A DNA stretch of 64,000 nt. It comes from Oculina patagonica (Eukaryota). Shown one piece after another: positions 16,836 through 63,734 of this stretch. A program made the position numbers and the translations under genes. Within the stretch, counting starts at the first letter, position 1, and the number at the start of each line of letters is the position of its first letter. The notes below the pieces were generated by a model, which made no database searches, was not told the origin of the DNA, and worked only from the letters and a program-made list of their open reading frames with translations. The stretch spans positions 248,001 through 312,000 of the forward strand of contig NC_135760.1 in assembly GCF_052425735.1 (NCBI RefSeq), read 5' to 3'.

Positions 16836-16844
16836 GCAACTGTG

Positions 16845-24662: not shown

Positions 24663-25368
24663 CCCGGGGTATGCAACCGAACAAAATCGAACCAAAAATC
24701 AATCGAACCCAATCGAACACCGATCGTTCGATCGGGTTCGGTAATCGAACAAAATCGAACATCTATTTTGCTGTGAGTTCGATTATCGAACCAATCGAAC
24801 CAATCGGACATAATCAAACACAATCGAACTCAATCGGGTTTGATTTTGTTTGGAATCTTTCTCTTGATAAGTAAATCACGCAGGACTAATCAAAATCAAC
24901 TTTTATTGAATGGAATAAATATAAAAATGTCCAAATATCGAACTGAATGTCAATGTTTAGTAAAATATATTTGGTAGAAGATAACAAAACAACGGTAAAA
25001 TAACTGAAATGCACTATTGTTTACATTCCTATATTAGAAGGAAGGATATGGTTTCTGCCCTGCTTTTCACCGTTACACTCAAACAGAATTTGCACCATTT
25101 CATTCACTGCAACACAGGCAGTTGTGTTTAATATGTGAAGAACACACATTTGGCAAAATTTCTCCCAACTTCGTGGCAGACTGCTGTGCCCGTGGCTATT
25201 GTGCAGACAATCGTCCTATCCCGAAGTATGACGAATCGCCAAAAAAGGATTAGGGGAACGGTGCACCGTACAATATGTACGCAGTATAAACAAACAGACC
25301 CCGAACCCAATCGAACGATTGGTGTTCGATTGAGTTCGATTACCGAACGTTCGATTGGATACCCCGGG
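24663..25368. mobile_element. 706-bp TIR element with a 6-bp TSD
   Basis: AATACG|CCCGGGGTAT...ATACCCCGGG|AATACG; empty site with a single AATACG at ~42180 in copy 2; subterminal AATCGAAC repeats. Confidence 0.9.
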
Positions 25369-26417
25369 AATACGGCCACCTCCCTATTACGGACGATCTC
25401 CAATGTCCCAACAAAATTTTCTTTTATTCTGTTTAGAAAAAAAACCTCTATAGTCTCAGCCCCAGGGAACAAATTCGTATAAACTTAACCCCCTTATAAT
25501 ATGGATACCTGTCTAATACGGACACTTTGCTCTGTCCCTTCGGTGTACGTATTAGAGAGGTTCAACTGTATCTTGTTACACCATAAGTGAAAAGATATTA
25601 GCGCGTGAGTTTTCTGTAATAGCTACCAGTCAATAACGTTATTGCAATTAGGTGTATACGGTAATTATGTGAGAATAAAATCGACCAATCAGCAAAACCG
25701 CGAATATAAAGCTATAAGGCGACGAGTGGAGGGTTTTTTGACACAGGCTATAGAAAAGAAAGAAAGTGTTGCAGCATGCAAAGAATGATTCCTGATTTTG
25801 TCTCGGTTTATATTTTCAGTATTTGATCTTAGATTTTAGTCTTTGAGTTAAATCGGCGTTTAATCGAGAAAATACAGCACTGAGACTTACAGTAACAGAT
25901 TTCTGTTGCTTGGATATTCCGCGGATTTTTTTTGCGAGAAAGACTTGCGACTTCGACACGCACAACATAGGCATACCCCTTCAAACGCGCACACAATCGT
26001 GTAGCAAATACTCCTTCTTACGGAGATATTTGCCTTTCAAAATACTGAAACAACAGGATTTTGCTAACGAGCTAAAATTTGCAAAAACTGGCCATTTTCA
26101 AGGCGGACCATTTTGCTCATTAACGTATTTCCAAACGTTGCACACAATAGAAGAGACCTTTTCATGGAATTAATTTAATATTTAAACCAACAGGAATCAG
26201 TACCGAGTAAGAAATTAACGGATTCTGTTGTCTTAATATTCAGAGAATTCCTCTCCATAAGAGACGTGACTTCGAAAGTTTGCACACAATAGACATGGAA
26301 TCGCACTCTTTCAAACGGGCACCCAATTGCCCAAGAAATCCTCCTTTTAAGGAAATATTTACATTATGTTTATTTGAATATTTAACGTGTATTTTCTTTC
26401 TCTTGAAATTTCGAACC

Positions 26418-26501
26418 ATCCTTTTAGCAGAGTTGCTTCGATCTTTCCTAGCTAAGTCCCAACTTATCAAGGTAAGATCGAAGCAACTCTGCTAAAAGGA
26501 T
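26418..26501. repeat. 84-nt near-perfect hairpin
   Basis: Perfect 28-bp arms extending to a 40-bp stem with 3 mismatches and a 4-nt loop; identical at ~43842-43925. Confidence 0.9.
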
Positions 26502-28135
26502 ACCTTTCACGGGGAAATACAGACATCAATATTAAACCAATAGGAATTGGGTAAAGAGTTAGAAACTGCCCAAAGTGACCATTTTCAGCGTAGACCATTC
26601 TGCTCATTAACAGATTTTTACCTGAATATTCAAATAACAGAAATCAGCTAACGAGAAAAATGGAGACTAGCAGTACTTCTACCTCCACCCCCAGGGTCAC
26701 CCCAACATTAAATTTGCCAGTACCCATTTGTATATCTGGAGAGAGGCGGACTGGGAGTCAAGTCTTCTGCCCCGTCTTTTGCCCAAGAACAGAAACAGGG
26801 CTCGAGTACCAACTACTTGATCCAAGTCCAGTCGGCTAACTGCTAGGGCCACGGCACCCTCACCACGTAACATAACACAAGAATAATCGCAAACACAAGG
26901 ATAAATGTGTTCACTTTTTAATAAGCCTACAGATACATGTGTGTGTTGCAGTGTACACTAGTGAGGTTATCAGGTTGTGCTCTTACATGTGTAAGTGAGA
27001 ATCAGCCAAGTCACAAAAAAGGACAGTCTCGAATTTGTTAATTTATTATTGTTAATTTATTATTATGATGTAAATGTAAACTAGTATTCATTAATTGTAA
27101 GACTGATAATGTAATAAATATAGAGTAGTTTTGATGGATGCATGGTATCATGTAGTGTCCAGTATTACACTAGTTGTGTTTGGTTAAAAAACAGAAAACA
27201 ATGATTTAAAAAAAATCCAGTCAGCTCCCATGGAGTAGACGCAAGGCCACGTTATCCCTCTTTGGTGTCATACAAGAGGCCTGAGGCATGAAGTAGTGAT
27301 CAGCCACCACTTAACCGTTGTGGAGTTGGATATTGGCATCTAGAAAGGAACAGAGGAAACAGTACAATTAATTGTTAATTTACCATGGCTGTGGGTAGTC
27401 AGTGAATTTTGGGTGGTGTGTTACTGGAGCTCTAAAACCCTTACCCTATACCCCATGCTCAGCTGCACTTTGCAACCATAATAACAAACTGTACATACCA
27501 AAAATCCCTACTCTAGATTGATCCCCAGACAAGCTAGTTTTCAGAACCTTTATAACTATTACAGTCAGTTGCTACTTAAGCTGCCACAATTATGCAAACA
27601 AGTGAGATATCAATTTGAACATGAGAAATTTCATATCTCCAAGCAGCCATGTATTTTATTTGTATTTCAATTTGTGTAAACCCATGTGTCAGGTTTTACA
27701 TGCAAAGTCTAGACTGAATTCTTCAAACCACTGATAAATGGTGTCACCCCATCAATGTCCTTGATAAAGCATGTGGCATCTGAAAACCCATCACTAAAAC
27801 GACTGGTTTATACTATCAAGGGAAAGAACTCTGGTTTAATTTTCACACCTTTTTTGATGAGATATTACAAATAAAATTTATGAAAAGCTGCTAAACTGTA
27901 AACTTCACAAGGTTAATTGTAAAATTCATTAACTATTCATGAGGGTGCAAACCAATCCCAGCACAGTATTCAGATCACATGTACACCCCTGTAAACCCCA
28001 ATACAAATCAAACAATATAATTAACTTTTGATACAGACTCCTGCTCAGCTAATTAGTATTCATTAACTTTTGATACAGATCTTGACTGATTCGCATAACA
28101 AAACTTTCCATTCAATTTATTGTTTTCATTTCACA

Positions 28136-28205
28136 AGTAGAATAAAAAATTCGCGTCCGATCTGTATGGCCGTTTACAATGGCTCGCCTAACGACTCGCC
28201 ATTGT

Positions 28206-28243
<38 letters not shown>
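28136..28243. repeat. Short hairpin-type repeat
   Basis: GATCTGTATGG.CGTTTACAATGGC...GCCATTGTAAACG.CCATACAGATC; also at ~45565-45672. Confidence 0.6.
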
Positions 28244-28246
<3 letters not shown>

Positions 28247-31200
28247 CTAAAAAATTCAACTTACAATCCAAACCTCCAATGGACAGGAGTAATGGCACTT
28301 CTCCAGCTGTATGTCCTTGTACAGGTACATTAGGAAATTAGTAGATCTTCAACACTGAGAGTTCCATTTTCCTCTGTTTAACTAGACAAAACGAAAAACA
28401 ATAGAGTGACATCAATTGTCATCACTGGGCAATTCCATGACTTAATTTCAATCATAACCTAATGATTTCACATTGGAAAATTATTGTGTACTAAATTACT
28501 GGTCATTATTTAGAAGATGATGCCACTTTATTTCAATTTATTTTAAAATGTAAAACCTAGAACTGAACACGAAAATTTGCTTGTCAACCATCTGTCCATT
28601 TTCAATAAATTATTTACCTTAAATCCAGGTTATTTTTAAGTTTGCAAGATTGACGACTTCAATTTGATGACCTTGTTTTTGCCAAAACAAGGTAAAACAG
28701 GTGATTTCTTCAGTTGAGTAGAACAAATTTAAAGAGCTAACTAAGGCTAATGTTTAAACTCGTTGCATTTAAGATTAACAACCATCACTGCATTTAGGGT
28801 TAATATCAATTTGACAAGCAGTGACTGTAACAAAAAGAAAAATATACTTAACCTTCTAAGAATGCACATTGTTGTACAATCCAGTTTTTTATTGTAACAG
28901 CAATTAATCTATCCTTTAAAATTAACCTGTTATATTTTATCCTTGGGTTATAATTCAAGTACTGTAAAAGCTGTCTTAAGCCCTAGGGGTACTTATTTCT
29001 TCTTCTGACCACCTTTTTTTGGAAGGGGGGGGGGGGGTTAATAGTCAAGTGGGATTGTTGAGATGGGGTGGCTTATAATATTTCAAATCATAATCAGTTA
29101 GTGTGTATGAAAAAAATTAAGTGGGCTTCCAAAGTTTGAGTGCTGTTTAGTAACACATTTTCACAAAAAGTAACAACAAAAAGAAAATGTGGTGGATGGA
29201 CAACTTTAAAAGTGTAAATAAAACCTTGTTTTCTTTTTCGTAAAATTAATTGTCACAATCTACTATCTAGAGAAAGGGGAGGCTATTTAAAAATTGAACT
29301 TCCAGATGGGGTCTTAAAACAGCTTTTAGAGTAACCATTAATAAAACAATAGATTTACCTTCAGATCATTACTCTGCTGGAATGAAGTCTTCTTCAAGGC
29401 TCATTTTGTTCTCAAAAGCTTTAGGCAGTTTCCATATTTAGCTTGGTTTCTTCATGTGTTACTACGACGTTTTTTTAAAAGTTGATTTGAATAATTTTAA
29501 AGGAGTGTTTTCTGCTGTCTGGTAGGTATTAATCCACATAATTACTAGCGCAAGTTTAATGTTATTACACCCTCTGCAATTTCAGGTTTTAGCTATGCAC
29601 GTCTGTGAAGGAAGTTATGGCAAACATTTTTTGTTCGGTACCTTTAGCAAAGTTGGTTCGGAGCTACCATATTCTTTTCGCTAAGCGTCTTTGGCTTTTA
29701 TTTCAAACTTACATGTAGCCTGGTGAACCCGGCGTTTATTTGACTCCTACCGTTTATTTGAACCTGATGTTGGGCATGATGCATCAGCAAAGGTTTACAC
29801 TTGATAAAAAACAAGCAACAAGTGACATCCATGTTAGAATGGAATTAAATTAGTTGCAAAATTGTTTATTTAACTTGATTCCAGTAAGGATGTGTATTGC
29901 AAGTGGGTTCAAATAGAAGTTGCTGTTCTATAGATTCAACAACAGAAGAGGAAGCCAGTGTTAATATACATGTACACATGTACTTCTGTACTTTTTTTAC
30001 CTTACTTTAAAACTGCATATGATACTACAGTAAGAATAAGACGTTGAGAGATCACTCAGTTACAAAATAGCCAAGCCTTTATTGATATATAACAGGAGGT
30101 TTAAAAAACGTTTACTCCTTATTTCAAAAGCTGAGTAATTCTTGAATAACTGGACATACATTTTGTCTGTATTCAAAGCACGGTTTCAAAACAAAACGAT
30201 CATGTTTATAAAAATACACATAAAACTATATCTGGGACATATTTATGTCACATTTTACCAAAAAATATATTGATTTTGCTTGGAAGCCTTCTCCAGTTGG
30301 AAGTGTTTAATACTTCATCCATGTTTAAAGAATGTATCAAATGTTATGGCTCATTGACGTGTTTAGTTTTTTGACACCACCTAACATTTCAAAGCCAGAA
30401 ATTCTTTATTAAGAAATTCAAGGAAGTATAAAACATTTATAAATGTATAAAACGGTGAGTAATTTGAGAGCAACAGAACAAAATAATTATTACAAACAAA
30501 AACATTGTGTTTATAAAAATAGATGCAAAACTCTGGGACTTATTTATTGAAAATAGTAGTCCAATCCATTTAGATAACCATATTTTACTCAAAAATATTT
30601 GATACCACTTGGAAGCCTTCTCTTGTTTAAATGTTACATATTTAAACAATGGTTTTACAAAAAAATGTGTCATTCATTTATGTCTCAGTGAAGATTTAGA
30701 TGTTTTTTTTTTCTGATTGTAAAGGTGTTTAGGAAAGGTCACAAAGATAACATTTAGTTCAGAGTTCATGCCAAGGGATTATTCTTTATAGTATAGTTAA
30801 GAAATTTCTGTGATCTTTCATAGATTAATGTTTCAATTTCTTAAAAACAACCATAGTGGAATGACCAAACAGTTTAGCAATGTTTATCACTTTATTGAGT
30901 TCAATAACAACAGGTAGCTTAAGAGGTTATTTAATTTTAACATACAAGCTTAACAACATTAGGTTTAATTAAGTTTTTTTAAAAATTAACCATTTAGTGG
31001 CTGACGATGCCCTTGTTTATCAAAAACTTAGGAGTTAAACGTTTGTTGTATCAGACATGATGACATGCAGTTTTAGATAATTTAAACATTATAAAAGAAA
31101 ATAAATCTCTCATCTCATAGATGAAAAAAGGGTTTAAGAGTACCAGTATACATGTCACATACTTTACCTTGACCTGTTTTATATGCTACATAATGTATTG

Positions 31201-31673
31201 GATAACATAAGGTTTAAATTTTAGCAACAAAACAAGCCTGGAATATTATGACATTGCCTAACAACTGGAAAGGTTTTTTTATGGTGTAACTGTTTAGCCA
31301 AAATAATCATTTTATACCGGTAAGTTTAAATGAATGGAACATTACTTGGTAAGGCATTAATTGTGTTCATCTTCCTTCTTTATCCACGTTTACCGAAGGC
31401 TCCATGCACAAAATTTCTTCAATTATGTACAAAAAAGAAATTAAATTGATTAACATTTCAATGTTTAGCAAAAGAAACCATGACTAAAAAACACTTATGA
31501 AAATAGCTGTCATCTCTACACTACAATGTAACAGAACGGGAAATAAGCACACTGCTACCTTTTTAACATGGAATATAGGCGTGTGCTTGTAATAATTTGT
31601 AAGAAATTTATCAAAACTCTATTAACAAGGCTTTAGATTCAAACGAGAATCCCTAGAAAAATTTGTAACTACT

Positions 31674-31771
31674 TCAATAAGGGTATGCTGCTTCACGAAC
31701 AATTTTCTTGACAGTACGAGCTGGTGGTGCCTTGAAAGTTGCAGATGAACTCACTGGAACTCTGGTTGGAG
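31674..31771 (-). pseudogene. Duplicated terminal coding exon of KHDRBS with no upstream exons in this contig
   Basis: Identical coding sequence to 49205-49108 ([32 protein letters not shown]) with an intact acceptor. Confidence 0.8.
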
Positions 31772-32262
31772 CTAAAATAAGAAGTTAATGTGAGTTTAAG
31801 ATTACCACTTATTGTAATGTTATGAGTTGAGCTGGAATAAAATTCATATTAGACTTAACAATATTTATTAAATTACACCGACTAAAGTTAGCCTTGTCTG
31901 AATAGTTTTAAAGAGTTATTCCTCGACCAATTAAACACACATGAACACTTTAAGCAACACCTTATTGTAGGAAGGTTTTGCAACAACCATTTTAACTTTA
32001 ACGATTGAAAAACATCACAAAGATTAGAGAGACAAAAAGTGAAAACAAATAATTTTAAAGTCTATATTTAAAACACCTCATAAACTACTTATTTGTCAAG
32101 CTGTGCTCCTCTCCACTTAAGTGTGAGAAAAGTAACAGCACCTTGTCTTTAGTTATTTGTCACTTTGAGAGGTACATTATATACTACACAGTTACATATT
32201 TATCAGAGTGGGCAGGGCTGATATTTTTAAATGGCAAAAGCAGTACTTTTAACCCATTTTAT

Positions 32263-32739
32263 TATATGTCTACAATAGTACGCGCGCTCTGATTGGCGGC
32301 TGAGCGGGCATTATTTTCTTGTAATGACCGGGCATTATGAAACTTTTTCTCGGCTTGACGGTTTTTTGAGTTGTGAGTTAAAGCTACTAGCGAGGGGGCA
32401 AAAAACAACAAAAAATGCCGACAAAATATAACTATCTTTTCAATAACTGAAAGAAAAATATAAGCATACCGATACTTCTTTAGTATGAGCGACGAAGAGA
32501 GCCACAGAGAGCGAGTTTTACCTCCAGTGTTTTTTCCCTTGATTATACTCTTTTTTTTGAATAGTGCTTAAAGGCCATATAATAAATAACTTATTAACCT
32601 CGTCCGTTCGGCCATTACAGGGGAATCTCAGACCTCGACCTTGATGTATTGACCTCGCTGTCGCTCGGTCAATACATCACGGCCTCGGTCTAAGATTCCC
32701 CTGTAATGACCTCACTCTCGGTTAATAAGTAGTATAACC
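32263..32739. mobile_element. Hairpin-ended (Crypton-like) repeat adjoining the gap
   Basis: Not present at the homologous position in copy 2; CTGATTGG head; terminal hairpin at ~32590-32730. Confidence 0.5.
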
Positions 32740-33239
32740 NNNNNNNNNNNNNNNNNNNNNNNNNNNNNNNNNNNNNNNNNNNNNNNNNNNNNNNNNNNNN
32801 NNNNNNNNNNNNNNNNNNNNNNNNNNNNNNNNNNNNNNNNNNNNNNNNNNNNNNNNNNNNNNNNNNNNNNNNNNNNNNNNNNNNNNNNNNNNNNNNNNNN
32901 NNNNNNNNNNNNNNNNNNNNNNNNNNNNNNNNNNNNNNNNNNNNNNNNNNNNNNNNNNNNNNNNNNNNNNNNNNNNNNNNNNNNNNNNNNNNNNNNNNNN
33001 NNNNNNNNNNNNNNNNNNNNNNNNNNNNNNNNNNNNNNNNNNNNNNNNNNNNNNNNNNNNNNNNNNNNNNNNNNNNNNNNNNNNNNNNNNNNNNNNNNNN
33101 NNNNNNNNNNNNNNNNNNNNNNNNNNNNNNNNNNNNNNNNNNNNNNNNNNNNNNNNNNNNNNNNNNNNNNNNNNNNNNNNNNNNNNNNNNNNNNNNNNNN
33201 NNNNNNNNNNNNNNNNNNNNNNNNNNNNNNNNNNNNNNN
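32740..33239. other. Assembly gap (500 N)
   Basis: Run of N. Confidence 1.
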
Positions 33240-35745: not shown

Positions 35746-36087
35746 AGCTGATTTCCAGTCCGTACTGCGCAGACTCGGCGTTTGTTTTCGTTTTTGTTTT
35801 GAATTCGTTGAAACGTTACACTTCGGTGACAGCATACATGAGGTTTTTTAGTCCGCCATTACAGTTCGTTTCGTTCACGAATTTCCGATGAGCTGAAACG
35901 TCGGTTTGAAATAGCGTCAAGGTTCTTCTACTCGTTATTATTTGTTCTGCAAGGATATCTGGCATTAATAATGAAGAAAAAGGTAAGTTTGTCGCGGAAT
36001 TTTTAGTTTTGCTTGTAAACATCTCTTCGTGTGAGGCTCACATAAACATTGCAGCCGAGATTGCGCAGTACGGACTGGAATTCATCT
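35746..36087. mobile_element. 342-bp TTAA-flanked TIR element (Kolobok-like 5'-AG termini)
   Basis: TTAA|AGCTGATTTCCAGTCCGTACTGCGCA...TGCGCAGTACGGACTGGAATTCATCT|TTAA; absent from copy 1 (~18680). Confidence 0.75.
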
Positions 36088-36121
36088 TTAAGCCCTCTTC
36101 CATCCAAGATTTGTATATTAA

Positions 36122-39100: not shown

Positions 39101-40401
39101 TATCCAAATATCGAGTTAACTCTGATTTTCTAAAACTACTTATCTGTGGTGGTGGGGACAGGAGATGGTATCACAAAAACTGCTGGAATTGGAAAGACAG
39201 TAAGATAAGAGATACATTATTGGTACTAATTTCCAGATCGCTTTAATTTCGCAATTTTCGCGATTTAAAAAAAAAAATTCCCGCGAACTTTAATGTCGCG
39301 AAATTTAATACCTTCCTATATTTTTTGTCTACGTATTGTGTATAATGTGTAAAAGCTCTATAGCATGCCTACATATGAGAGGCCCAAAAACTTTATGCCA
39401 ATGGTACACATAGCTCTAGCCGAGTATAATTCACGGCTACAATGTAAATATGCATTGTACAATTGCAAAGAACGTTAAGCACAAGGATAATGTCTTTGAA
39501 TTTGCCTGTAGTACAAGATGTGTTTTCTATAGTTTGGTTTTGTTATAAAAAGTGTAAAATAATGATAAAATTCTCGAAATGAAATGTGTTGTATTTTAAT
39601 TTTCGCGAAATATAATTCCCCAAGAAAATAAGCTTGCACGCAAATCGCGACCTTTTTTTCGCGAAATTAAGTACCCGCGAAAATTAGTACCAATAATGGG
39701 AGTAATGACCAAAGGTAACAGATATTGCTGAAGCGCTCATGTTTAGGCTATTGTTAATATGAACAAACTCTTATTTGTTTTTATTTTGGATAATCACGTT
39801 GCGCAATTTTCATTTTAAACATGGAAATTTGCGTCATAATTGAAAGAGGTGAGTTTCCGCGCGCGCACTTTTTGTTTTTCGGTGCAGGCGGAAATAAATA
39901 AATAATTTTCCCGAATCAGTAAATAGAGTTTAAAATTAGACAAATCAGATGAGTCCAATTCTGGTCCTAATTTATTTTAACACTCGAAAAGCTTTTGGTA
40001 ATGATCTCTTCGATCTCGTCCTCAGTTTTCATGTCTTCAAAAGAAAACGTTTGGCAACTAAAAGTATCAAATTCTTTTATCGCAATCGCGCGCTTTGAAA
40101 CGTTTGTTCTCATATTTTGCTCACATGCGAACGTAATAATTTTATCCTTTGTAAAAGCGACGCAAAGCTTAACAACTAATTCAAAGAAAACTTAATGTAA
40201 TAAAAAGGAAACGCCCACCTCTCTAGCCATGATTCGCGCCACGTGTGAAGCGTCGAGTGGCTCATGTTTGTTTGTGCACGAAAAATCACCAACACAAACT
40301 CCGTCCGTTCTCCCAGTCTCTACATCTCTAAAAGTATTTTGGCTGTAAAAGTCGCTAAACTCTTTAGCTGAAGTGTTTGATAAACACGAAGTACTATCCA
40401 T
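36122..40401 (-). CDS. Uncharacterised ~354-aa coiled-coil/NPF protein (copy 2)
   Basis: Exons 40401-40219, 39086-39026, 38727-38440, 37801-37631, 37053-36892 (6-nt in-frame insertion), 36681-36505 and 36144-36122. Splice sites and frame are conserved with copy 1. Confidence 0.75.
38273..38361. mobile_element. 89-bp palindromic micro-MITE, 9-bp TSD
   Basis: TTCCATCGC|CAACCTCGTTCCCAGGG...CCCTGGGAACGAGGTTG|TTCTATCGC; empty site in copy 1 at ~20782-20790. Confidence 0.9.
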
Positions 40402-40474
40402 CTTTTCTCAATTCTCTTTGCACAGTGCTTCAGCAAGCGCTCAACACCAAATGCAAAAATTTTCAATCTGATAA

Positions 40475-40500
40475 GTTGCTATGACAACTTCCATGGTAAC
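40475..40500. promoter_or_regulatory. Tandem RFX X-box motifs (copy 2)
   Basis: Identical to copy 1. Confidence 0.65.
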
Positions 40501-41028
40501 TGTTTGCGCCGTCACTTCAGGACGTCACTGAACGGGAAGCCTGGTGACTAAGATGTATTCGCGCGAAAACGCAAAGTTGAAACTGATTCCCGTCTGGCTG
40601 GCAATCTCGATTGATCCTAAAAAAAAATAAAGCTTTCAGATTCTGTTTCTATTCTTTAGCTGTTTGTAGAGTGTTTGAACACCCTGACTTAATTATCAAT
40701 TATTTGATTCTATAAGCGATTAACACAATACTTACCGTTAAAAGTTCCAAAATTTCCCACTTCATGATATGTATAGATGTAAAATTTTGACTTCAACATA
40801 ACGTTAAATAAAACGTTAACTAGGAGAACTAAAATTAATTTTGTCGTTTTGACTGAAAATATTTGCCCTTTCACGCTTTAGAGTGACAAATTAGCAACTG
40901 AAAATATCAAAATTGCAGTCTGGAGTTGACATAACAAATTCTTGAAACGGTCTGACGCTGACTTAAGTGGAACGTAAAACAACGTTCACAGTTAAACTTG
41001 TAACAAGACTTTTCGACCGCAAACCTAA

Positions 41029-41472
41029 AGGCCTGGCCAAACGCACCCAACATTTCAACGCAACATATCCCAACATTGTTGCGCACAGCATGTTGCAATC
41101 GTTTGGCCACCCTGTCGCAACATGTTGCAACATGTTGGATGATGTTGGATCAAGTTTGAAAATGGTCAAATTTTTCTTCCAACATCTCGCAACATTTTTG
41201 GATGTTGCATGATGTTGTACTCGTTTGGCCACGTTCGTGCAACATTGTTGCGCTGGAGCATGCGCACTAGTTCGATATTCGCCATCCAACATATCGCAAC
41301 ATATCGCAACAGGGTGGCCAAACGCGTGCAACATGTTTTGCACAACAATGTTGCGATGTGTTGCGTTGAAATGTTGCGTGCGTTTGGCCAGCTGCTTCAC
41401 AACATCTCACAACATGACCCAACAATGTTGGGATATGTTGCGTTGAAATGTTGCGTGCGTTTGGCCGGGCCT
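41029..41472. mobile_element. PIF/Harbinger-like MITE with internal CAACAT/ATGTTG repeats
   Basis: TAA|AGGCCTGGCCAAACGCAC...GTGCGTTTGGCCGGGCCT|TAA; absent from copy 1 (~23380). Confidence 0.8.
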
Positions 41473-43178
41473 TAAGGCCTTCTTCGGTTTGAAAAAAGCA
41501 ACAGCTAACTTAACGGTTCACATTTGCGCGTGCGCGGTTGACTGAATACAACAAAACACGCGAACTGCGCGAGACCGGTGAACATTGCGCAAGCGATTTG
41601 TATATGACTAATTGTATATATCTGGCATTGCTGGTCTCTGCGAATGCCATGCTTCAAGGAAAAGCCTCAAGGTAATTGTTCGCTTTGTCAACAACAGTGG
41701 CGTGGTAAACATCCATTTCATGGTGAAAATAAGGGTCGGACAGGGGGGTAAGTGGTATACCAGTATACTTGAAAAGCTTGTACCCAGTACACCCAAAAAT
41801 TCCCCTCAAAATCATGCAAAATACCAAATTTGGAATAACACAGTATACTTTATGCAATTTTAGGAAAATCTTAAGCTAGTCTTGATCAAAAAGTGCAATC
41901 ACGACATACTGTTAGTTACACGTGAATGCAAAATAGCCGCAAGCTCATAAACCTGTCCGTACGGAGAGGTTCGACTGTAAATTGATGAGCCTGGAACAGG
42001 CTATCCTGGAACATGCGCTTAATTAACTCTTATTTGCGCATACCTTTTTCTTTTTTCTAAGACATCCTTATTGCAATTAGGTGTATATATATTTTAGATC
42101 GATTCCAAAGCCTAAATCTTACTATATTCAGCGCTGGAAAGCGCAGAAATAAACTTCACCCAGAGAATGACACCTCTCTAATACGGCCACCTCCCTATTA
42201 CGGACGATCTCCAATGTCCCAACAAAATTCTCTTTAGAAAAAAACCTCTATGATACGGACTCTCTCCAATACGGACAACAGACACTAAATCTCAGCCCCA
42301 GGGAACAAATTCGTATAAACTTAACCCCCTTATAATATGGATACACTTTGCTCTGTCCCTTCGGTGTACGTATTAGAGAGGTTCAACTGTATCTTGTTAC
42401 ACCATAAATAAGTGAAAAGATATTAGCGCGTGAGTTTTCTGTAAAAGCTACCAGTCAATAACGTTATTGCAATTAGGTGTATACGGCAATTATGTGAGAA
42501 TAAAATCGACCAATCAGCAAAACCGCGAATATAAAGCTATAAGGCGACGAGTGGAGGGTTTTTTGACACAGGCTATAGAAAAGAAAGAAAGTGTTGCAGC
42601 ATGCAAAGAATGATTCCTGATTTTGTCTCGGTTTATATTTTCAGTATTTGATCTTAGATTTTAGTCTTTGAGTTAAATCGGCGTTTAATCGAGAAAATAC
42701 AGCACTGAGACTTACAGTAACAGATTTCTGTTGCTTGGATATTCCGCGGATTTTTTTTGCGATAAAGACTTGCGACTTCGACACGCACAACATAGGCATA
42801 CCCCTTCAAACGCGCACACAATCGTGTAGCAAATACTCCTTCTTACGGAGATATTTGCCTTTCAAAATACTGAAACAACAGGATTTTGCTAACGAGCTAA
42901 AATTTGCAAAAACTGGCCATTTTCAAGGCGGACCATTTTGCTCATTAACGTATTTCCAAACGTTGCACACAATAGAAGAGTGACCTTTTCATGGAATTAA
43001 TTTAATATTTAAACCAACAGGAATCAGTACCGAGTAAGAAATTAACGGATTCTGTTGTCTTAATATTCAGAGAATTCCTCTCCATAAGAGACGTGACTTC
43101 GAAAGTTTGCACACAATAGACATGGAATCGCACTCTTTCAAACGGGCACCCAATTGCCCAAGAAATCCTCCTTTTTAA

Positions 43179-43769
43179 CTCTTTCAGTGCTAAAGTCGAC
43201 TTTTGTCGACATTTGGAGGAGCAGTCAATGAACCACTTGTGACGTCATTAATTTAAAAGTCAGCAGATTTTGGTGATAAGCATCTGATAGAGCTAGGTTT
43301 GACCTTTTCAAAGAACTATTCACTTTGCGTATCGGTCGCATCCTAACAGAGCTAATCGAGAAAAAGTCAATCACTTTTTAGTGCAAAATCGGTGCTTAAA
43401 AAGGCCAAAACACCTGTAAAAGATCGAGGTCCTCTTGACAGGGTTTACCAATGTTTTTATCAAAACTTTTTTGGTCTAAAGGAAGGACGAATACAGTAGA
43501 AAGAAGTGGAAATAACAAAGCCAAGAGAAACGAAAGGAAAAGGAGCAAGAAAAAAAATGGAAACGATTTCAAAGTCCAAATTTTGGCTTATGCGCATGCA
43601 CCAAAGTACATTTTTGTACATTTTTTAATGGAATCTTCCTCAAAATCTTGCTGCATTGTGGAAAAGTGCTTTTTAAGTAAAGTTAAGGGAAATCCAGGAT
43701 CGTAGCATCAAAAATTCAGTTTGACGGTAAAAAAAACCCAGTTTTTGGAGGAATTCAGCACTGAAAGGG
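43179..43769. mobile_element. piggyBac-like non-autonomous element (591 bp)
   Basis: TTAA|CTCTTTCAGTGCT...AGCACTGAAAGGG|TTAA; single-TTAA empty site at 26347-26350 in copy 1. Confidence 0.88.
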
Positions 43770-44479
43770 TTAAGGAAATATTTACATTATGTTTATTTGA
43801 ATATTTAACGTGGATTTTCTTTCTCTTGAATATTTCGAACCATCCTTTTAGCAGAGTTGCTTCGATCTTTCCTAGCTAAGTCCCAACTTATCAAGGTAAG
43901 ATCGAAGCAACTCTGCTAAAAGGATACCTTTCACGGGGAAATACAGACATCAATATTAAACCAATAGGAATTGGGTAAAGAGTTAGAAACTGCCCAAAGT
44001 GACCATTTTCAGCGTAGACCATTCTGCTCATTAACAGATTTTTACCGGAATATTCAAATAACAGAAATCAGCTAACGAGAAAAATGGAGACTAGCAGTAC
44101 TTCTACCTCCACCCCCAGGGTCACCCCAACATTAAATTTGCCAGTACCCATTTGTATATCTGGAGAGAGGCGGACTGGGAGTCAAGTCTTCTGCCCCGTC
44201 TTTTGCCCAAGAACAGAATGCAATAACCCTGGTCAGGGCTCGAGTACCAACTACTTGATCCAAGTCCAGTCGGCTAACTGCTAGGGCCACGGCACCCTCA
44301 CCACGTAACATAACACAAGAATAATCGCAAACACAAGGATAAATGTGTTCACTTTTTAATAAGCCTACAGATACATGTGTGTGTTGCAGTGTACACTAGT
44401 GAGGTTATCAGGTTGTGCTCTTACATGTGTAAGTGAGAATCAGCCAAGTCACAAAAAAGGACAGTCTCGAATTTGTTAA

Positions 44480-45633
44480 TTTATTATTGTTAATTTATTA
44501 TTATGATGTAAATGTAAACTAGTATTCATTAATTGTAAGACTGATAATGTAATAAATATAGAGTAGTTTTGATGGATGCATGGTATCATGTAGTGTCCAG
44601 TATTACACTAGTTGTGTTTGGTTAAAAAACAGAAAACAATGATTTAAAAAAAATCCAGTCAGCTCCCATGGAGTAGACGCAAGGCCACGTTATCCCTCTT
44701 TGGTGTCATACAAGAGGCCTGAGGCATGAAGTAGTGATCAGCCACCACTTAACCGTTGTGGAGTTGGATATTGGCATCTAGAAAGGAACAGAGGAAACAG
44801 TACAATTAACTGTTAATTTACCATGGCTTTCGGTAGTCAGTGAATTTTGGGTGGTGTGTTACGGGAGCTCTAAAACCCTTACCCTATACCCCATGCTCAG
44901 CTGCACTTTGCAACCATAATAACAAACTGTACATACCAAAAATCCCTACTCTAGATTGATCCCCAGACAAGCTAGTTTTCAGAACCTTTATAACTATTAC
45001 AGTCAGTTGCTACTTAAGCTGCCACAATTATGCAAACAAGTGAGATATCAATTTGAACATGAGAAATTTCATATCTCCAAGCAGCCATGTATTTTATTTG
45101 TATTTCAATTTGTGTAAACCCATGTGTCAGGTTTTACATGCGAAGTCTAGACTAAATTCTTCAAACCACTGATAAATGGTGTCACCCCATCAATGTTCTT
45201 GATGACAATAAAGCATGTGGCATCTGAAAACCCATCACTAAAACGACTGGTTTATACTATCAAGGGAAAGAACTCTGGTTTAATTTTCACACCTTTTTTG
45301 ATGAGATATTACAAATAAAATTTATGAAAAGCTGCTAAACTCTAAACTTCACAAGGGTTATTGTAAAATTCATTAACTATTCATGAGGGTGCAAACCAAT
45401 CCCAGCACAGTATTCAGATCACATGTACACCCCTGTAAACCCCAATACAAATCAAACAATATAATTAACTTTTGATACAGACTCCTGCTCAGCTAATTAG
45501 TATTCATTAACTTTTGATACAGATCTCGACTGATTCCATTCAATTTATTGTTTTCATTTCACAAGTAGAATAAAATATTCGCGTCCGATCTGTATGGCCG
45601 TTTACAATGGCTCGCCTAACGACTCGCCATTGT

Positions 45634-45674
<41 letters not shown>

Positions 45675-46951
45675 CTAAAAAATTCAACTTACAATCCAAA
45701 CCTCCAATGGACAGGAGTAATGGCACTTCTCCAGCTGTATGTCCTTGTACAGGTACATTAGGAAATTAGTAGATCTTCAACACTGAGAGTTCCATTTTCC
45801 TCTGTTTAACTAGACAAAACGAAAAACAATAGATTGACATCAATTGTCATCACTGGGCAATTCCATGACTTAATTTCAATCATAAGCTAATGATTTCACA
45901 TTGGAAAATTATTGTGTACTAAATTACTGGTCATTATTTAGAAGATGATGCTACTTTATTTCAATTTATTTTAAAATGTAAAACCTAGAACTGAAAACGA
46001 AAATTTGCTTGTCAAACCATCTGTCCATTTTCAATAAATTATTTACCTTACATCCAGGTTATTTTTAAGTTTGCAAGATTGACGACTTCAATTTGATGAC
46101 CTTGTTTTTGCCAAACAAGGCAAAACAGGCGATTTCTTCAGTTGAGTAGAACAAATTTAAAGAGCTAACTAAGGCTAATGTTTAAACTCGTTGCATTTAA
46201 GATTAACAACCATCACTGCATTTAGGGTTAATATCAATTTGACAAGCAGTGACTGTAACAAAAAGGAAAATATACTTAACCTTCTAAGAATGCACATTGT
46301 TGTACAATCCAGTTTTTATTGTAACAGCAATTAGTCTATCCTTTAAAATTAACCTGTTATATTTTATCCTTGGGTTATAACTCAAGTACTGTAAAAGCTG
46401 TCTTAAGCCCTAGGGGTACTTATTTCTTCTTCTGACCGCCTTTTTTTTGGAAGGGGGGGGGATTAATAGTCAAGGGGGATTGTTGAGATAGGGTGGCTTA
46501 AAATATTTCAAATCATAATCAGTTAGGGTGTGTATGAAAAAATTAAGTGGGCTTTCCAAAGTTTGAGTGCTGTTTAGTAACACATTTTCACAAAAAGTAA
46601 AAACAAAAAGAAAATGTGGTGGATGGGCAACTTTAAAAGTGTAAATAAAACCTTGTTTTCTTTTTCATAAAATTAATTGTCACGATCTATTATCTAGAGA
46701 AAGGGGAGGGGAGGCTATTTAAAAAATTGAACTTCCAGATGGGGTCTTAAAAGAGCTTTTAGAGTAACCATTAATAAAACAATAGATTTACCTTCAGATC
46801 ATTACTCTGCTGGAATGAAGTCTTCTTCAAGGCTCATTTTGTTCTCAAAAGCTTTAGGCAGTTTCCATATTTAGCTTGGTTTCTTCATGTGTTACTACGA
46901 CGTTTTTTTAAAAGTTGATTTAAATAATTTTAAAAGAGTGTTTTCTGCTTT
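44480..46951 (-). other. Putative spliced non-coding exons downstream of the KHDRBS stop codon
   Basis: Candidate exons 46951-46792, ~46340-46281, 45809-45693 and 44777-~44480. Strong acceptors (ttttcgttttgtctag, tttcctctgttcctttctag), donors (gtaaat, gttaag, gtaagt) and AATAAA at ~44499-44480. No long ORF. Confidence 0.4.
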
Positions 46952-49107
46952 CTGGTAGGTATTAATCCACATAATTACTAGCGCAAGTTTAATGTTATTA
47001 CACCCTCTGCCATTTCAGGTTTTAGCTATGCACGTCTGTGAAGGAAGTTATGGCAAACATTTTTTGTTCGGTACCTTTAGCAAAAGTTGGTTGGGAGCTA
47101 CCATATTCTTTTCACTAAGCGTCTTTGGCTTTTATTTCAAACTTACATGTAGCCTGGTGAACCCGGCGTTTATTTGACTCCTACCGTTTATTTGAACCTG
47201 ATGTTGGGTATGATGCATCAGCAAAGGTTTACGCTTGATAAAACACAAGCAACAAGTGACATCCATGTTAGAATGGAATTAAATTAGTTGCAAAATTGTT
47301 TATTTAACTTGATTCCAGTAAGGATGTGTATTGCAAGTGGGTACAAATAGAAGTTGCTGTTCTATAGATTCAACAACAGAAGAGGAAGCCAGTGTTAATA
47401 TACACAATCATGTACTTCTGTACCTTTTTTTACCTTACTTTAAAACTGCATATGATACTACAGTAAGAATAAGACGTTGAGAGATCACTCAGTTACAAAA
47501 TAGCCAAGCCTTTATTGATATATAACAGGAGGTTTAAAAAACGTTTACTCCTTATTTCAAAAGCTGAGTAATTCTTGAATAACTGGACATACATTTTGTC
47601 TGTATTCAAAGCACGGTTTCAAAACAAAACGATCATGTTTATAAAAATACACATAAAACTATATCTGGGACATATTTATGTCACATTTCACCAAAAAATA
47701 TATTGATTTTGCTTGGAAGCCTTCTCCAGTTGGAAGTGTTAAAGTACTTCATCCATGTTTAAAGAATGTGTCAAATGTTATGGCTCATTGATGTGTTTAG
47801 TTTTTTGACACCACCTAACATTTCAAAGCCAGAAATTCTTTATTAAGAAATTCAAGGAAGTATAAAACATTTATAAATGTATAAAACGGTGAGTAATTCG
47901 AGAGCAACAGAACAAAATAATTATCACAAACAAAAACATTGTGTTTATAAAAATAGATGCAAAACTCTGGGACTTATTTATTGAAAATAGTAGTCCAATC
48001 CATTTAGATAACCATATTTTACTCAAAAATATTTGATACCACTTGGAAGCCTTCTCTAGTTTAAATGTTACATATTTAAACAATGGTTTTACAAAAAAAT
48101 GTGTCATTCATTTATGTCTCAGTGAAGATTTAAATGTTTTTTTTTTCTGATTGTAAAGGTGTTTAGGAAAGGTCACAAAGATAACATTTAGTTCAGAGTT
48201 CATGCCAAGGGATTATTCTTTATAGCATAGTTAAGAAATTTCTGTGATCTTTCATAGATTAATGTTTCAATTTCTTAAAAACAACCATAGTGGAATGACC
48301 AAACAGTTTAGCAATGTTTATCACTTTATTGAGTTCAATAACAACAGGTAGCTTAAGAGGTTATTTAATTTTAACATACAAGCTTAACAACATTAGGTTT
48401 AATTAAGTTTTTAAAAAATTAACCATTTAGTGGCTGACGATGCCCTTGTTTATCAAAAAACTTAGGAGTTAAATGTTTGTTGTATCAGACAGGATGACAT
48501 GCAGTTTTAGATAATTTAAACATTATAAAAGAAAATAAATCACTCATCTCATAGATGAAAAAAGGGTTTAAGAGTACCAGTATACATGTTACATACTTTA
48601 CCTTGACCTGTTTTATATGCTACACAATGTATTGGATAACATAAGGTTTAAATTTTAGCAACAAAACAAGCCTGGAATATTATGACATTGCCTAACAACT
48701 GGAAAGGTTTTTTTATGGTGTAACTGTTTAGCCAAAATAATCATTTTATACCGGTAAGTTTAAATGAATGGAACATTACTTGGTAAGGCATTAATTGTGT
48801 TCATCTTCCTTCTTTATCCACGTTTACCGAAGGCTCCATGCATAAAATTTCTTCAATTATGTACAGAAAAGAAATTAAATTGATTAACATTTCAATGTTT
48901 AGCAAAAGAAACCATGACTAAAAAACACTTATGAAAATAGCTGTCATCTCTACACTACAATGTAACAGAACAGGAAATAAGCACACTGCTACCTTTTTAA
49001 CACAGAATATAGGCGTGTGCTTGTAATAATTTGTAAGAAATTTATCAAAACTCTATTAACAAGGCTTTAGATTCAAACGAGAATCCCTAGAAAAATTTGT
49101 AACTACT

Positions 49108-49384
49108 TCAATAAGGGTATGCTGCTTCACGAACAATTTTCTTGACAGTACGAGCTGGTGGTGCCTTGAAAGTTGCAGATGAACTCACTGGAACTCTGGT
49201 TGGAGCTAAAATAAGAAGTTAATGTGAGTTTAAGATTAACCACTTATTGTAATGTTATGAGTTGAGCTGGAATAAAATTCATATTAGACTTAACAATATT
49301 TATTACATTACACCGACTAAAGTTAGCCTTGTCTGAATAGTTTTAAAGAGTTATTCCTCGACCAATTAAACACACTTCTCAAAC

Positions 49385-49421
<37 letters not shown>

Positions 49422-52400
49422 TAGCCGTGACGGTGGTTTGGATTCCCGATCTTAATTAGCATAGATTTTTACGATTTTATTTCTCCGTTTACTCCGTAGT
49501 TTTTGTTTCGATTGAGAAGATATATCAAACACTCGAGACAGTGTTTCATCGGCTATCCAAACACCTCAAATTTCGTCAAAAATACTCCGCTGCACGTCGT
49601 ATTTTCAACTCTCTTCTCAGTGTTTGGATATCCCGATGAAACACTGCCTCTCGTGTTTGATATATTACATGAACACTTTAAGCAACACCTTATTGTAGGC
49701 AAGTTTTGCAACAACCATTTTAACTTTAATGATTGAAAAACATCACAAAGATTAGAGAGACAAAAAGTGAAAACAAATAAAATTTTAAAGTCTATATTTA
49801 AAACACCTCATAAACTACTTATTTGTCAAGCTGTGCTCCTCTCCACTTAAGTGTGAGAAAAGTAACAGCACCTTTTGTTTTTAGTTATTTGTCACTTTGA
49901 GAGGTACATTATATACTACACAGTTACATATTTATCAGAGTGGGCAGGGCTGATATTTTTAAATGGCAAAAGCAGTACTTTTAACCCATTATTATTGTTG
50001 GGGGGTAAGCTAATTACTCAGCAATTAACATGAAATCAAACAATAGCTTGAAAAGCACCTACAGTATAATGTTAAATTGAGTTGTTGCAAAAGTGCTCTA
50101 CAATAAGGCAGTGACATGTACATGTATACTGTAATTTTAATTGTGAAAAACAACAAAATTAAAATAATTGATCAAGATAATATCCAACTTTGGCCACTAA
50201 CCTTTTTTGTATGTGTACATGTAAAGATGTAAATGCAAACCTCTTGGTTAAGCATATACCAGTTTGTTACCAAAAGAAAGTTTGTGTGTACATGACTGTA
50301 CATGTACAGTAATTTATTTCATAAAATGTAAAATTCTTGTTAATCAAGTTACAAGCACAAACATGTAGTTCAAAATGAAGTTTTAAAGTTTTAAAACAAT
50401 CATTCTTATTATGTGTTCATCTAATTTTAACCAAAGAATTGGAACAATGATAAAGGCAACACAACAGGAAATAAAGAAATAAATGTACTACACCATTTAT
50501 GCTAAAATTATGAGAAAAGTCATTACTCTTTCCACACAATTATTTTTCAGGGGAACACTGAAAATCACTAATTTACACAGAATATGATTTTAACAACAAT
50601 AATTAAAGTTCATTTACTAATTATGTTGAGGATTAAAATAAAGCATGAAGATAAATGCCAATTTTTTTTTTCTAGTCTTAAAGGTGGATATTATCTTGAT
50701 CACAGGATTTAAGTTTATTATACACAATGTAACAGAGCATTTTCTTATTACCAATGAAGTCATCTTTGTATTAAGATAGTGGTCTCATATTATTTTATAC
50801 ATACAGAGAGAAACTATCAGTAACTTGACAAAAAAGGTTACATGAAACAAAAATGTACAACAATTTGATGTCATGTTAGAAATCCACTTTTTATGTAAAA
50901 TTCATTCCAGTATGATTTGTTTAATTTTTTTAATTAAAAAAATGTCGCCTTATCATGTCAACTCACCTACAGACTTGTGCACCAAGGTATTCAATTTCAG
51001 ATTAAAGCTACATGTACATTTAATTATAATGGGACTTGCATGTTTCCGGGAATCTAAAAGAATGGCATACGGAATGTAGACAAACAGATCACCTACCTGG
51101 ATATGCTGTTTCATAAACCTCTGGCTGTCCATACTCATAATACACTGTGTCGCTGTTGATTTGTACAACAAACAGTCACCCATCGTATAAAGACTACAGA
51201 ATTTCGTTGGTTGCTATCCCAAATTCATAATCAACCGATCAAATGCTCTATGTATCTACTGCCATGCTGCCGCAATTATGACAATATGTAATTTGTGATA
51301 ATCAGAATTTTTATTTGTTTGAAATAGAAAATACCATTAGAGTCCATTGAGAAATGGTCAGCCTCCTTGGCCTACACATTACTCTGTCAAATTAAATTTT
51401 TATTATTTCGTTTTGTGAAAATATTGTTCTTTGATAATCATTTTCTTTCATTATTGTGATACTATTGTTCTTAGTTTGCTCTGGTGCATGTACATGAATG
51501 TTTTTAGCTATGCTGCTGTATCCTATTGATGTGCCAATTAAATGTTTCGTGGCCTAGCAGACGTGCCAATGCAACCAGATTTTGTAAACACATACATGTA
51601 CAATGACTTGTAGCTGTCAGGTAATACTTACCCAGCTTCAGGATAAGCTGCTTCAAATTCATAACCAGGCTCATAAGGTTCATAACCCTAAAAAACAAAC
51701 ATCATCATCAATAAATCATAACAAAGCAATACTCATAAAAGATAATACTCATAAAAGATAAAAACTGCCAAAGGGCTTATATTTTTCTGTTAAAATAAGG
51801 ATACTTATTTTATTCATGTCTGACACAAAGGTTGCATAACACTTCTGGAATGAAATAAGTTAAAGAATCGAATCAAGGTTTCAAATAATAAGGTTTATTT
51901 TACACTTATTTTGTCATTTATATTTGGTTTAGGATTTATAATTAAACTTAAAATTTACAGGTGTAAAGAAAACAGACAGTATTGTTGGTTTAGTTAGTCA
52001 TGGTTACATCAATGTACTGCAAGAATTTAAGTTTTTTTTAACATGCTACCATGTCACTTATTGAGGCCCTTCCACTTACAATCACTTGTTCTCCTGAAGT
52101 CAGCAGTTGAACCCCGATTGTTGCTGGAAGAGCATGCACTGCCTAACAGATAACAAGTAAAATTTGCTCGGGATTATCAGTTATGCAGTAGTAGCATTTT
52201 ATAACCAAGTTATTTGTGTTTATATGTAAAATGTGGTTAGTACGGGTCTCCTTCCAGTAACTACACTACTAGGAACAATCTTTTACAAGAACAATGAAAT
52301 TATTATCTTGGAATGACTATTTTGAATTTGTTTAAGATGGCTCCATACATTTATCATTAATTTTACAGATTTGCACACACCAATGTTCTCTAGGAAAGTG

Positions 52401-63694: not shown

Positions 63695-63734
63695 GTAAAT
63701 AAAAGTGAACTAACAAGAACGAGGTTTTCTAACC

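Follow-up and report, generated by a model that had tools for sequence, protein, structure and literature searches.

Oculina patagonica has a single KHDRBS (Sam68/SLM-like) gene, and the region downstream of the last coding exon at this locus is its extended 3' end. As a whole, it is best explained as an extended, spliced 3' end that follows the logic of a decay-coupled feedback, a reading to which we give a probability of roughly 0.55. The region lies in a 64,000-nt window of contig NC_135760.1 (positions 248,001 to 312,000 of the forward strand, assembly GCF_052425735.1), and coordinates below are those of the window (Table 1); a slash marks an exon boundary. An earlier note, made from the sequence alone, had described here a chain of spliced non-coding exons and interpreted them as a possible NMD-coupled autoregulatory 3' end. 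The splice motifs that it observed and the layout that it proposed are supported, and its exact exon chain is not.

Only one KHDRBS (Sam68/SLM) homologue was identified in the O. patagonica genome. Thus, any such loop in this coral would be auto-regulation, not cross-regulation. The protein matches the Pfam models for Qua1 (PF16274, 41.6 bits; cut-off 29.3) and KH-I (PF22675, 55.9 bits; cut-off 30), as well as PF00013 (24.6 bits; cut-off 21.5), and therefore has both the Qua1 dimerisation region and the STAR-type KH domain of the KHDRBS subfamily. Its top matches in protein searches are cnidarian and vertebrate KHDRBS1-3 (E values of 1e-60 and better), and its composition is KHDRBS1-3-like, with a Pro/Arg-rich region, a Tyr-rich region and a C-terminal KAPxAR..PY motif. 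The vertebrate Sam68-YY model (PF16568) gave no match to the coral proteins. Exon 9, the translation of which is identical to O. patagonica protein P0013, encodes the C-terminal KAPxAR..K..RE..PY motif that an alignment of C-termini places in all of vertebrate KHDRBS1-3; its coding part is 0.93-0.98 identical to Orbicella. After the GDPYG exon, the intron contains a conserved peptide that was considered as a second poison exon and rejected, since isoform X1 of Oculina, Acropora and Montipora already has it annotated as an in-frame cassette of 21 aa.

Table 1. Features of the KHDRBS 3' end and of its second copy in the window.
Feature	Positions	Strand	Remarks
Exon 8, penultimate coding exon	51097..51152	-	donor 51097 shared by two alternative joints
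Exon 9, coding part	49108..49205	-	stop TGA at 49110-49108
3'UTR continuation of exon 9	45693..49107	-	3415 nt, unspliced in the main RNA contigs
U(U/A)AA cluster ending in conserved AAUAAA (48330-48325)	48276..48500	-	motif count and conservation
Best conserved non-coding block, exon-like boundaries (first exon of the earlier note)	46792..46951	-	conservation only
Dispersed-repeat insertion within the 3'UTR, Oculina-specific	46381..46772	-	at least 40 genome copies
Alternative exon, 117 nt	45693..45809	-	RNA joint and conserved splice sites
3'UTR intron	44778..45692	-	contig exit at 45693; acceptor inferred
Terminal non-coding exon (inferred)	44464..44777	-	length fit and conservation
Copy A of the same 3' region	26347..31940	-	on a contig between two N gaps

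RNA evidence comes from the contigs of three runs (X1, X2 and X5) and three studies. The canonical joint of exon 8 to exon 9 (51097 to 49205, GT..AG, minus strand) is present in all three. RNA depth is 45-65 across 49205-45693 compared with 0-13 in intron 8, and contigs cover the UTR without a gap (X1, 46474-49207; X5, 45782-48796; X2, 45693-46694 and 46754-47740). Given this unbroken cover, most of the stretch flagged in the earlier note is one 3.4 kb 3'UTR; of the spliced exons claimed within it, 45809-45693 stands and the remainder is mostly continuous UTR. The cDNA contigs of other corals also contain continuous 3'UTRs of at least 1.5-2.3 kb. Montipora has a long continuous 3'UTR, the available genomic locus stopping 2.1 kb into it, and the sole stretch that its cDNA contigs have in common with the Oculina UTR is one 25-nt motif. 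In X2, the contig with the CDS and the proximal UTR is covered about six-fold more deeply than the distal UTR, and in X1 the depth of the long spliced form is near that of the coding contig, although contig depth is a poor gauge of expression. The dispersed repeat in the UTR is missing at the homologous place in Orbicella and in the metagenome corals. A 78-aa ORF in the UTR found no match when used as a query for cDNA contigs, and the small-RNA run X22 has a single read in the stretch.

The UTR ends at an internal 5' splice site (ATT/GTAAGT at 45693) that is used in two runs, as the X2 and X5 contigs leave the genome exactly there and carry 314 and 436 more letters, respectively. The X2 contig passes from 46694 through 45693 into its 314 letters without a branch and so ties 1 kb of UTR to the junction; the X5 contig likewise runs on into its 436 letters. 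Neither set of letters has a partner within 45201-45692. The contig break falls 38 nt before a nearby repeat; the intron contains a MITE-like inverted repeat (~45570-45667), and an Rfam search with the inverted repeats returned hairpin matches below threshold only. Joined at 44777, the further letters of X2 (314) and X5 (436) would bring the transcript ends to 16 and 13 nt, respectively, past two hexamers: the poly(A) signal AATAAA at 44485-44480, correctly located by the earlier note at ~44480, and ATTAAA at 44360-44355, after which there is a possible second transcript end near 44342. The acceptor (TGTTCCTTTCTAG/) and the first 45-110 nt of the terminal exon are conserved in four other coral contigs. 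Based on this conservation and on the length fit to the poly(A) signals, 45693 is probably spliced to 44777. Exon 9 with the stop codon thus continues into the 3.4 kb 3'UTR up to its internal 5' splice site, which is joined to sequence beyond it; that sequence probably starts at acceptor 44777, with candidate poly(A) sites near 44464 and 44342. We consider the transcript architecture very likely to be correct.

A minor isoform joins exon 8 straight to 45809 and ends in a short basic tail. This joint (51097 to 45809, GT..AG, minus strand) is found in X5 only, one of the three runs, with a depth of 24 versus 104 for the canonical joint. Its product reads ...AYP-VKQRKMELSVLKIY followed by a stop, and exon 9 with the C-terminal motif is skipped. 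The stop ends at 45766, 73 nt before donor 45693. This bears out the claim that exon 8 has an alternative splice which omits the exon with the C-terminal motif and brings in a premature stop, over 55 nt ahead of another junction. In the long-UTR form, 45809-45693 is simply the end of exon 9. Acceptor TTGTCYAG/ and donor GGATT/GTARGT are kept in five taxa. The earlier note had proposed looking for equivalent exons in other anthozoans, and a homologous VK(R/Q)xK... tail does occur in RefSeq isoforms of Stylophora and Pocillopora and in the Logan-derived protein P0167; in the homologous exon of Pocillopora a GTAAAG donor follows ~80 nt after the stop. Conservation of the first five tail residues (VKxRK) could indicate a functional protein isoform and not a target of decay.

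Comparison of the distal exons covers the robust-clade stony corals. Among them, the splice-site motifs at 46951/46792, 45809/45693 and 44777 are invariant across 4-6 taxa, with a background identity of 0.6-0.7. In Orbicella a gap of 3.7 kb interrupts the locus immediately past the homologue of 45693, and the Pocillopora contig is scrambled between gaps, so the last exon was compared via metagenome contigs. The second copy in the window adds nothing to this comparison. The two copies (26347-31940 and 43770-49375) are 97.7% identical, RNA contig variants are in the copy-A state at 19 of 35 positions and at six indels, and each RNA run carries one copy state only. They thus behave as alleles, and copy A is best read as the other haplotype. 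Preservation in both copies, to which the earlier note appealed, is therefore void as evidence of constraint.

The best conserved non-coding block, 46951-46792, has an identity of 0.90-0.95 that drops ~20 nt beyond its donor, and its CTACCAG/ and AAG/GTAA motifs are invariant in six taxa including Pocillopora. It contains in-frame stops and is kept better than its flanks, and its indels across taxa are not multiples of three. In the RNA contigs of the three runs, which lose rare forms, it forms no joint. The block is a candidate for a rarely used poison exon or for a conserved element resembling a 5' splice site.

U(U/A)AA motifs, of which the earlier note had found the region very rich, are truly but modestly enriched across the 3'UTR (138 observed against 107 expected, z 3.4, 1.3-fold) and are densest at 48500-48276 (18 motifs where 9.3 are expected, z 3.8, reached in 0 of 500 shuffles). 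This cluster is 0.80-0.93 identical to Orbicella; five coral taxa have 19-24 motifs per ~300 nt at this place, and CTCAATAAAGTGATAAAC is almost invariant. Judging by these counts, the coral has the UAAA/UUAA motifs of the KHDRBS "alternative 3' end 2" feedback, and the cluster is a candidate binding platform for KHDRBS protein. Conservation and a drop in X2 depth led us to hypothesize a proximal poly(A) site at ~48310, which we treat as hypothetical because the drop sits elsewhere, at 48558-48412, and does not coincide with the AAUAAA at 48330.

In both spliced forms the stop precedes an exon junction by more than 55 nt (3415 nt in the long-UTR form and 73 nt in the exon-9-skipping form), so that both would be NMD substrates. 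We propose that KHDRBS protein would bind the U(U/A)AA cluster adjoining AAUAAA at 48330, and that binding may change how often a short stable 3' end is used rather than a long, spliced, unstable one. This would be the logic of the "alternative 3' end 2" feedback of vertebrate SLM2 and Sam68. NMD-coupled self-regulation of coral KHDRBS is a tentative proposal, to which we give somewhat less than an even chance. The abundance of the long spliced form (depth 45-65) counts against it, because an mRNA that is degraded efficiently would be expected to be scarcer.

An equivalent layout is found in the vertebrate loop; the earlier note had pointed to alternative 3' exons of mammalian SLM genes coupled to NMD. 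SLM2 (KHDRBS3) and Sam68 (KHDRBS1) belong to the orthologous family and, like the coral gene, have the stop in terminal coding exon 9; this exon contains an internal 5' splice site with non-coding exons downstream (Ehrmann et al. 2016, PMC5199341). The mRNA with the alternative end is sensitive to NMD, and its production is induced by the encoded protein. UAAA/UUAA sites are present in the region, and SLM2 and Sam68 levels are held steady via this NMD-prone 3' end (PMC5199341). In vertebrates, and probably in the coral gene, the internal 5' splice site leads to a non-coding exon with the junction far past the stop. In both, UAAA/UUAA motifs are enriched yet sparse just upstream of that site, and the arrangement is kept between species. 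The coral gene differs in having this site 3.4 kb into the UTR, a single inferred downstream exon where vertebrates have two, and an additional exon-9-skipping variant; its spliced form is also abundant, whereas that of vertebrates is barely detectable. NMD sensitivity and induction by the protein were shown in vertebrates and in the coral are predicted from the layout.

Two further systems offer partial parallels. Slm1 is described as cross-regulated by SLM2 via alternative splicing coupled to NMD (Traunmuller et al. 2014, as cited in PMC5199341). On that account an alternative 3' exon leads to an unproductive KHDRBS mRNA, as may occur in the coral; with a single coral KHDRBS, in contrast, only self-regulation is possible. 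In the unproductive splicing of SR and hnRNP genes, as presented in Lareau and Brenner (2015, PMC4379411), conserved stop-bearing exons recall the exon-like block 46951-46792, and the 3'UTR intron in a splicing-regulator gene is likewise found among the RNA-binding protein genes of that account. In contrast to those poison exons, inclusion of 46951-46792 was not observed in three runs, and the block is ~90% conserved over 120 nt among robust-clade corals rather than ultraconserved.

Three other explanations of the region were weighed. In the exact model of the earlier note, four non-coding exons (46951-46792, 46340-46281, 45809-45693 and 44777 to the poly(A) site) are spliced into a chain that is entered from exon 8 at 46951. 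All its motifs are at the claimed places, both acceptors (ctaccag/ before 46951, tttaaag/ before 46340, ttgtctag/ before 45809 and cctttctag/ before 44777) and donors (AAG/gtaaat at 46792, AAG/gttaag at 46281 and ATT/gtaagt at 45693), and 46951-46792 is the best conserved non-coding block, with splice motifs invariant in six taxa. Splicing exon 8 to 46951 would indeed read ESRKHSFKII and a stop, but the junction 51097 to 46951 has no RNA joint. Donor 45693 and acceptor 45809 are used, whereas contigs of the three runs cross 46951, 46792, 46340 and 46281 unbroken. An NMD-degraded form could be too rare for contigs; however, junction contigs with depths of 4-24 were seen elsewhere and none at these four sites. 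In addition, other corals have only a weak donor at 46281 (GTCAAG), where conservation also extends past the exon, and without the Oculina repeat insertion the intron separating 46951-46792 from 46340-46281 would measure only ~60 nt. We regard this chain as very unlikely. Still less probable, and rejected on contig linkage, is an independent lncRNA downstream of KHDRBS with its own start site, which the earlier note had offered as its alternative. It has the absence of coding potential in its favor and nothing else. The contigs physically join exon 8 to 45809 and link the distal UTR to exon 9, as expected if the downstream sequence is part of the KHDRBS transcript. Even depth over 49205-45693 and a splice orientation that matches KHDRBS also speak against a separate RNA, and in other corals single cDNA contigs span both the CDS and a long 3'UTR.

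A third alternative, on the whole unlikely, is an ordinary long 3'UTR whose intron is spliced constitutively, combined with a genuine alternative protein isoform and without decay-coupled feedback. The PY-type C-terminal motif would then be swapped for a basic tail (VKxRK...), altering localisation or partners. The abundance of the distal UTR form agrees with this explanation, as does the intron of X2, which seems fully spliced because the contig has no branch at 45693. The tail begins VK(Q/R)(R/I)K in Oculina, Orbicella, Stylophora and Pocillopora, its stop position is kept, and four of the seven nucleotide changes between Oculina and Orbicella within it are synonymous. However, past five residues the tail is poorly kept (its length is 9-14 aa), and that of one taxon is frameshifted to an earlier stop. 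Nucleotide conservation runs beyond the stop to the donor, which is itself conserved and lies 73-80 nt downstream of the stop in Oculina and Pocillopora. A protein isoform would also leave the U(U/A)AA cluster and the unused-looking exon 46951-46792 unexplained.

For the extended 3' end with decay-coupled feedback logic, there is a bolder version, in which a self-limiting KHDRBS 3' end predates the cnidarian-bilaterian split and was kept for more than 600 million years, with 46951-46792 as a second, strongly degraded poison exon. We consider this quite improbable. If true, the decay-coupled 3' end would be no vertebrate invention, and the splice site, downstream exon and UWAA sites would already have been present in the cnidarian-bilaterian common ancestor. 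The authors of the vertebrate study could date the loop only to before the vertebrate gene triplication (PMC5199341), and in a cnidarian that has one KHDRBS gene and a matching 3'-end arrangement, its age would become directly testable. The gene model itself is corrected to a 3'UTR of ~3.7 kb with an intron, together with an exon-9-skipping isoform that is unannotated in Oculina. The coral would offer a simple one-gene system for studying the KHDRBS loop, in which the conserved UWAA cluster and the conserved silent exon are concrete targets for binding and splicing assays.

The KHDRBS (Sam68/SLM-like) gene is encoded on the minus strand of the window, and its exons translate exactly to the Oculina patagonica protein P0013 (401 aa), which has Qua1 and STAR-type KH domains. 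The last exon encodes a KAPxAR..K..RE..PY motif common, in our alignment, to vertebrate KHDRBS1-3. Except for a duplicated 3' part, KHDRBS is single copy in the Oculina genome. An in-frame cassette exon is kept in Pocillopora, Acropora and Montipora and included in the Oculina isoform P0153 (422 aa); some gene models (P0016, P0132) read through its donor and terminate there.

Coordinates of features at and around the KHDRBS locus (window positions unless a locus is named)
Feature	Position	Strand	Context
Copy A contig, 15.9 kb	16836-32739		between N gaps 16336-16835 and 32740-33239
In-frame cassette exon, 63 nt	52080-52142	-	between GDPYG exon and GYEPYEP exon
Dispersed repeat	46772-46381	-	inserted in Oculina only
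Upstream 7TM receptor gene	L001 (Orbicella) 1-2244; L004 (Pocillopora) 2729-5295	opposite to KHDRBS	

RNA contigs from three runs (X1, X2, X5), each of a different study, were aligned over 45201-51200. We take them as RNA because the GT..AG joint 51097->49205, from exon 8 to the stop-bearing exon 9, is found in all three, and depth is 0-13 in intron 8 versus 45-65 after the stop codon. The contigs cover 49205 to 45693 unbroken (X1, 46474-49207; X5, 45782-48796; X2, 45693-46694 and 46754-47740), and none of the three runs has a reported joint at 46951, 46792, 46340 or 46281, even though joints with depths of 4-24 were reported at other positions. Therefore, the bulk of this stretch is one long, plain 3'UTR. 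The earlier note had proposed a chain of four non-coding exons here; three of them do not form exons of their own in the main transcripts of these runs, and the real junctions differ from those it drew. Its attribution of the downstream sequence to KHDRBS holds: RNA contigs join exon 8 to 45809 and the UTR to the coding exons, and the sequence belongs to the KHDRBS mRNA. The note's observation is partly confirmed and its interpretation partly supported. A 5'-splice-site-like AAG/GTAAAG at 48602 (-), ~500 nt past the stop, is kept as AAG/GTAGGC in Orbicella; no joint from it was seen in the RNA contigs.

The exon at 45809-45693 is real. X5 contains a GT..AG joint 51097->45809 (depth 24; canonical joint, 104), and contigs of X2 and X5 diverge from the genome precisely at 45693, immediately before GTAAGT, continuing for 314 and 436 letters that are absent from 45201-45692 and from all of the aligned stretch. 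Because this departure precedes the nearby inverted repeat by 38 nt, a polymorphic insertion does not explain it. The X2 contig passes unbranched from 46694 through the 45693 junction, so essentially every long-UTR transcript in X2 has the 3'UTR intron spliced out. The KHDRBS mRNA contains an alternative exon, conserved and bearing a premature stop, and a 3'UTR intron whose splicing is seen in the RNA. MITE-like inverted repeats are present in this intron (45570-45667) and in intron 8 (49522-49663); with contig depths up to 2,900 and 9,000 and many irregular "joints", they are dispersed repeats expressed elsewhere, and Rfam gave only sub-threshold miRNA-like matches to them.

We infer that the 45693 donor is spliced to the acceptor that the earlier note placed at 44777. 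Beginning there, exons of 314 and 436 nt would end at 44464, 16 nt past AATAAA (44485-44480), and at 44342, 13 nt past ATTAAA (44360-44355), and TGTTCCTTTCTAG, which ends at the acceptor, is conserved together with the next 45-110 nt in four further coral contigs, where it lies ~450 nt beyond the homologue of 45693.

Window 17103-32263 repeats 34175-49996. The contig carrying copy A holds only exon 9 of KHDRBS plus downstream sequence; it is 88-97.7% identical to 34175-49996, its left part (88-91%) far more diverged than its right, and 26347-31940 matches 43770-49375 at 97.7%. A true tandem duplication fits less well, as RNA variants of other individuals match copy-A states one haplotype at a time: 19 of 35 single-base variants in RNA contigs of other samples, and six indels likewise, have exactly the copy-A state, each run shows one state only, and run X1 joins copy-A states in the UTR to exon 8. 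The two copies therefore behave as alleles, and copy A is most likely a haplotig retained in the scaffold; preservation in both copies, cited in the earlier note, says nothing about constraint. Assembling this locus seems difficult in several corals: in Orbicella scaffold L001 (19473-23971) the conserved 3'UTR block is repeated after a 3.7 kb gap, and in Pocillopora L004 exons 7-8 and UTR blocks lie in inverted order between gaps.

We compared the locus with Orbicella faveolata (L001) and Pocillopora damicornis (L004) genomic sequence and with seven coral metagenome contigs (L016-L022) retrieved by a pattern from a conserved block, the distal exons being compared only within robust-clade stony corals. 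Over a UTR background identity of 0.6-0.7 to Orbicella, peaks occur at the coding exon (0.93-0.98), 48380-48291 (0.92) and 46910-46791 (0.90-0.95). Six taxa, Pocillopora among them, have an invariant acceptor CTACCAG/46951 and donor AAG/GTAA at 46792; conservation ends ~20 nt past this donor, and indels in 46951-46792 are not multiples of three. The 45809 acceptor and 45693 donor are kept in five taxa. At 46340-46281 the acceptor is conserved, the donor is weak elsewhere, and conservation extends beyond the exon. Montipora cDNA and genomic sequence match, at 96% identity, a 25-nt motif at 47942-47966 (-) that has a related copy at 47636-47671, although elsewhere the UTR cannot be aligned across the two coral clades. 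A 7TM receptor gene (7tm_1 family) upstream of KHDRBS in Orbicella and Pocillopora, and a putative Oculina ORF (63429-63698, +), 7TM-receptor-like by eye, suggest that local synteny is conserved.

The U(U/A)AA richness remarked on earlier is real, if modest, over the UTR sense strand (138 motifs versus 107 expected from dinucleotide-preserving shuffles, z 3.4) and is concentrated at 48500-48276 (18 versus 9.3, z 3.8, 0/500 shuffles). This cluster is conserved in five coral taxa at similar motif density and ends with a nearly invariant CTCAATAAAGTGATAAAC, ~780 nt past the stop, likely a proximal poly(A) signal. In X2, depth on the contig with the CDS and the initial 650 nt of UTR is six times that on the distal UTR, which fits a proximal 3' end in most X2 transcripts, contig depth being a poor measure and the drop not located at that signal.

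A rule known in other animals predicts NMD for stops more than 50-55 nt upstream of a junction. From the canonical stop (49110-49108) it is 3415 nt downstream to the 45693 junction. When exon 8 is joined to 45809, exon 9 is lost and the frame reads ...AYP-VKQRKMELSVLKIY-stop, the stop ending 73 nt before 45693. A stop in an NMD-type position, as the earlier note supposed, arises via 51097->45809 and not via its proposed 51097->46951; both spliced forms are configured as NMD substrates, assuming that the rule applies in corals. The exon-9-skipping isoform is, judging from gene models and contigs, not peculiar to Oculina: homologous tails occur in RefSeq models of Stylophora (P0157, ...ATFA-VKRIKVISKR-stop) and Pocillopora (P0161, P0162, ...ATFA-VKRRKVIFQ-stop) and in P0167, recorded from Logan contigs. 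The tail may itself function as a short basic peptide, and VKxRK is kept across taxa; nothing else in it is, it is 9 to 14 residues long depending on the taxon, and a frameshift in one contig gives an earlier stop. What stays constant in the exon is its splice sites and a stop that comes early, well before the donor, as in Pocillopora (~112 nt, stop ~80 nt before a GTAAAG donor).

In mouse, human and chicken SLM2, and in Sam68, an internal 5' splice site in exon 9 leads to two downstream non-coding exons; this "alternative 3' end 2", whose regulated region has UAAA/UUAA sites, is induced by the encoded protein itself and stabilised by cycloheximide or UPF1 depletion, and Ehrmann et al. (2016) inferred a loop older than the SLM2/Sam68 split (PMC5199341). 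Coral KHDRBS, an orthologue present in single copy, shares this layout, and U(U/A)AA motifs are sparse just upstream of 45693, like the vertebrate internal site (PMC5199341). Unlike the vertebrate genes, it has its splice site 3.4 kb inside the UTR, with one probable downstream exon instead of two, and unlike "alternative 3' end 2" its spliced form is abundant and accompanied by an exon-9-skipping variant. No report of such a layout in cnidarians was found in the literature searched. As to an origin before the cnidarian-bilaterian split, the distal-exon comparison covers robust-clade stony corals only. The spliced forms of the coral KHDRBS 3' end may be coupled to NMD and to self-regulation, to which we assign a probability of about 0.4.
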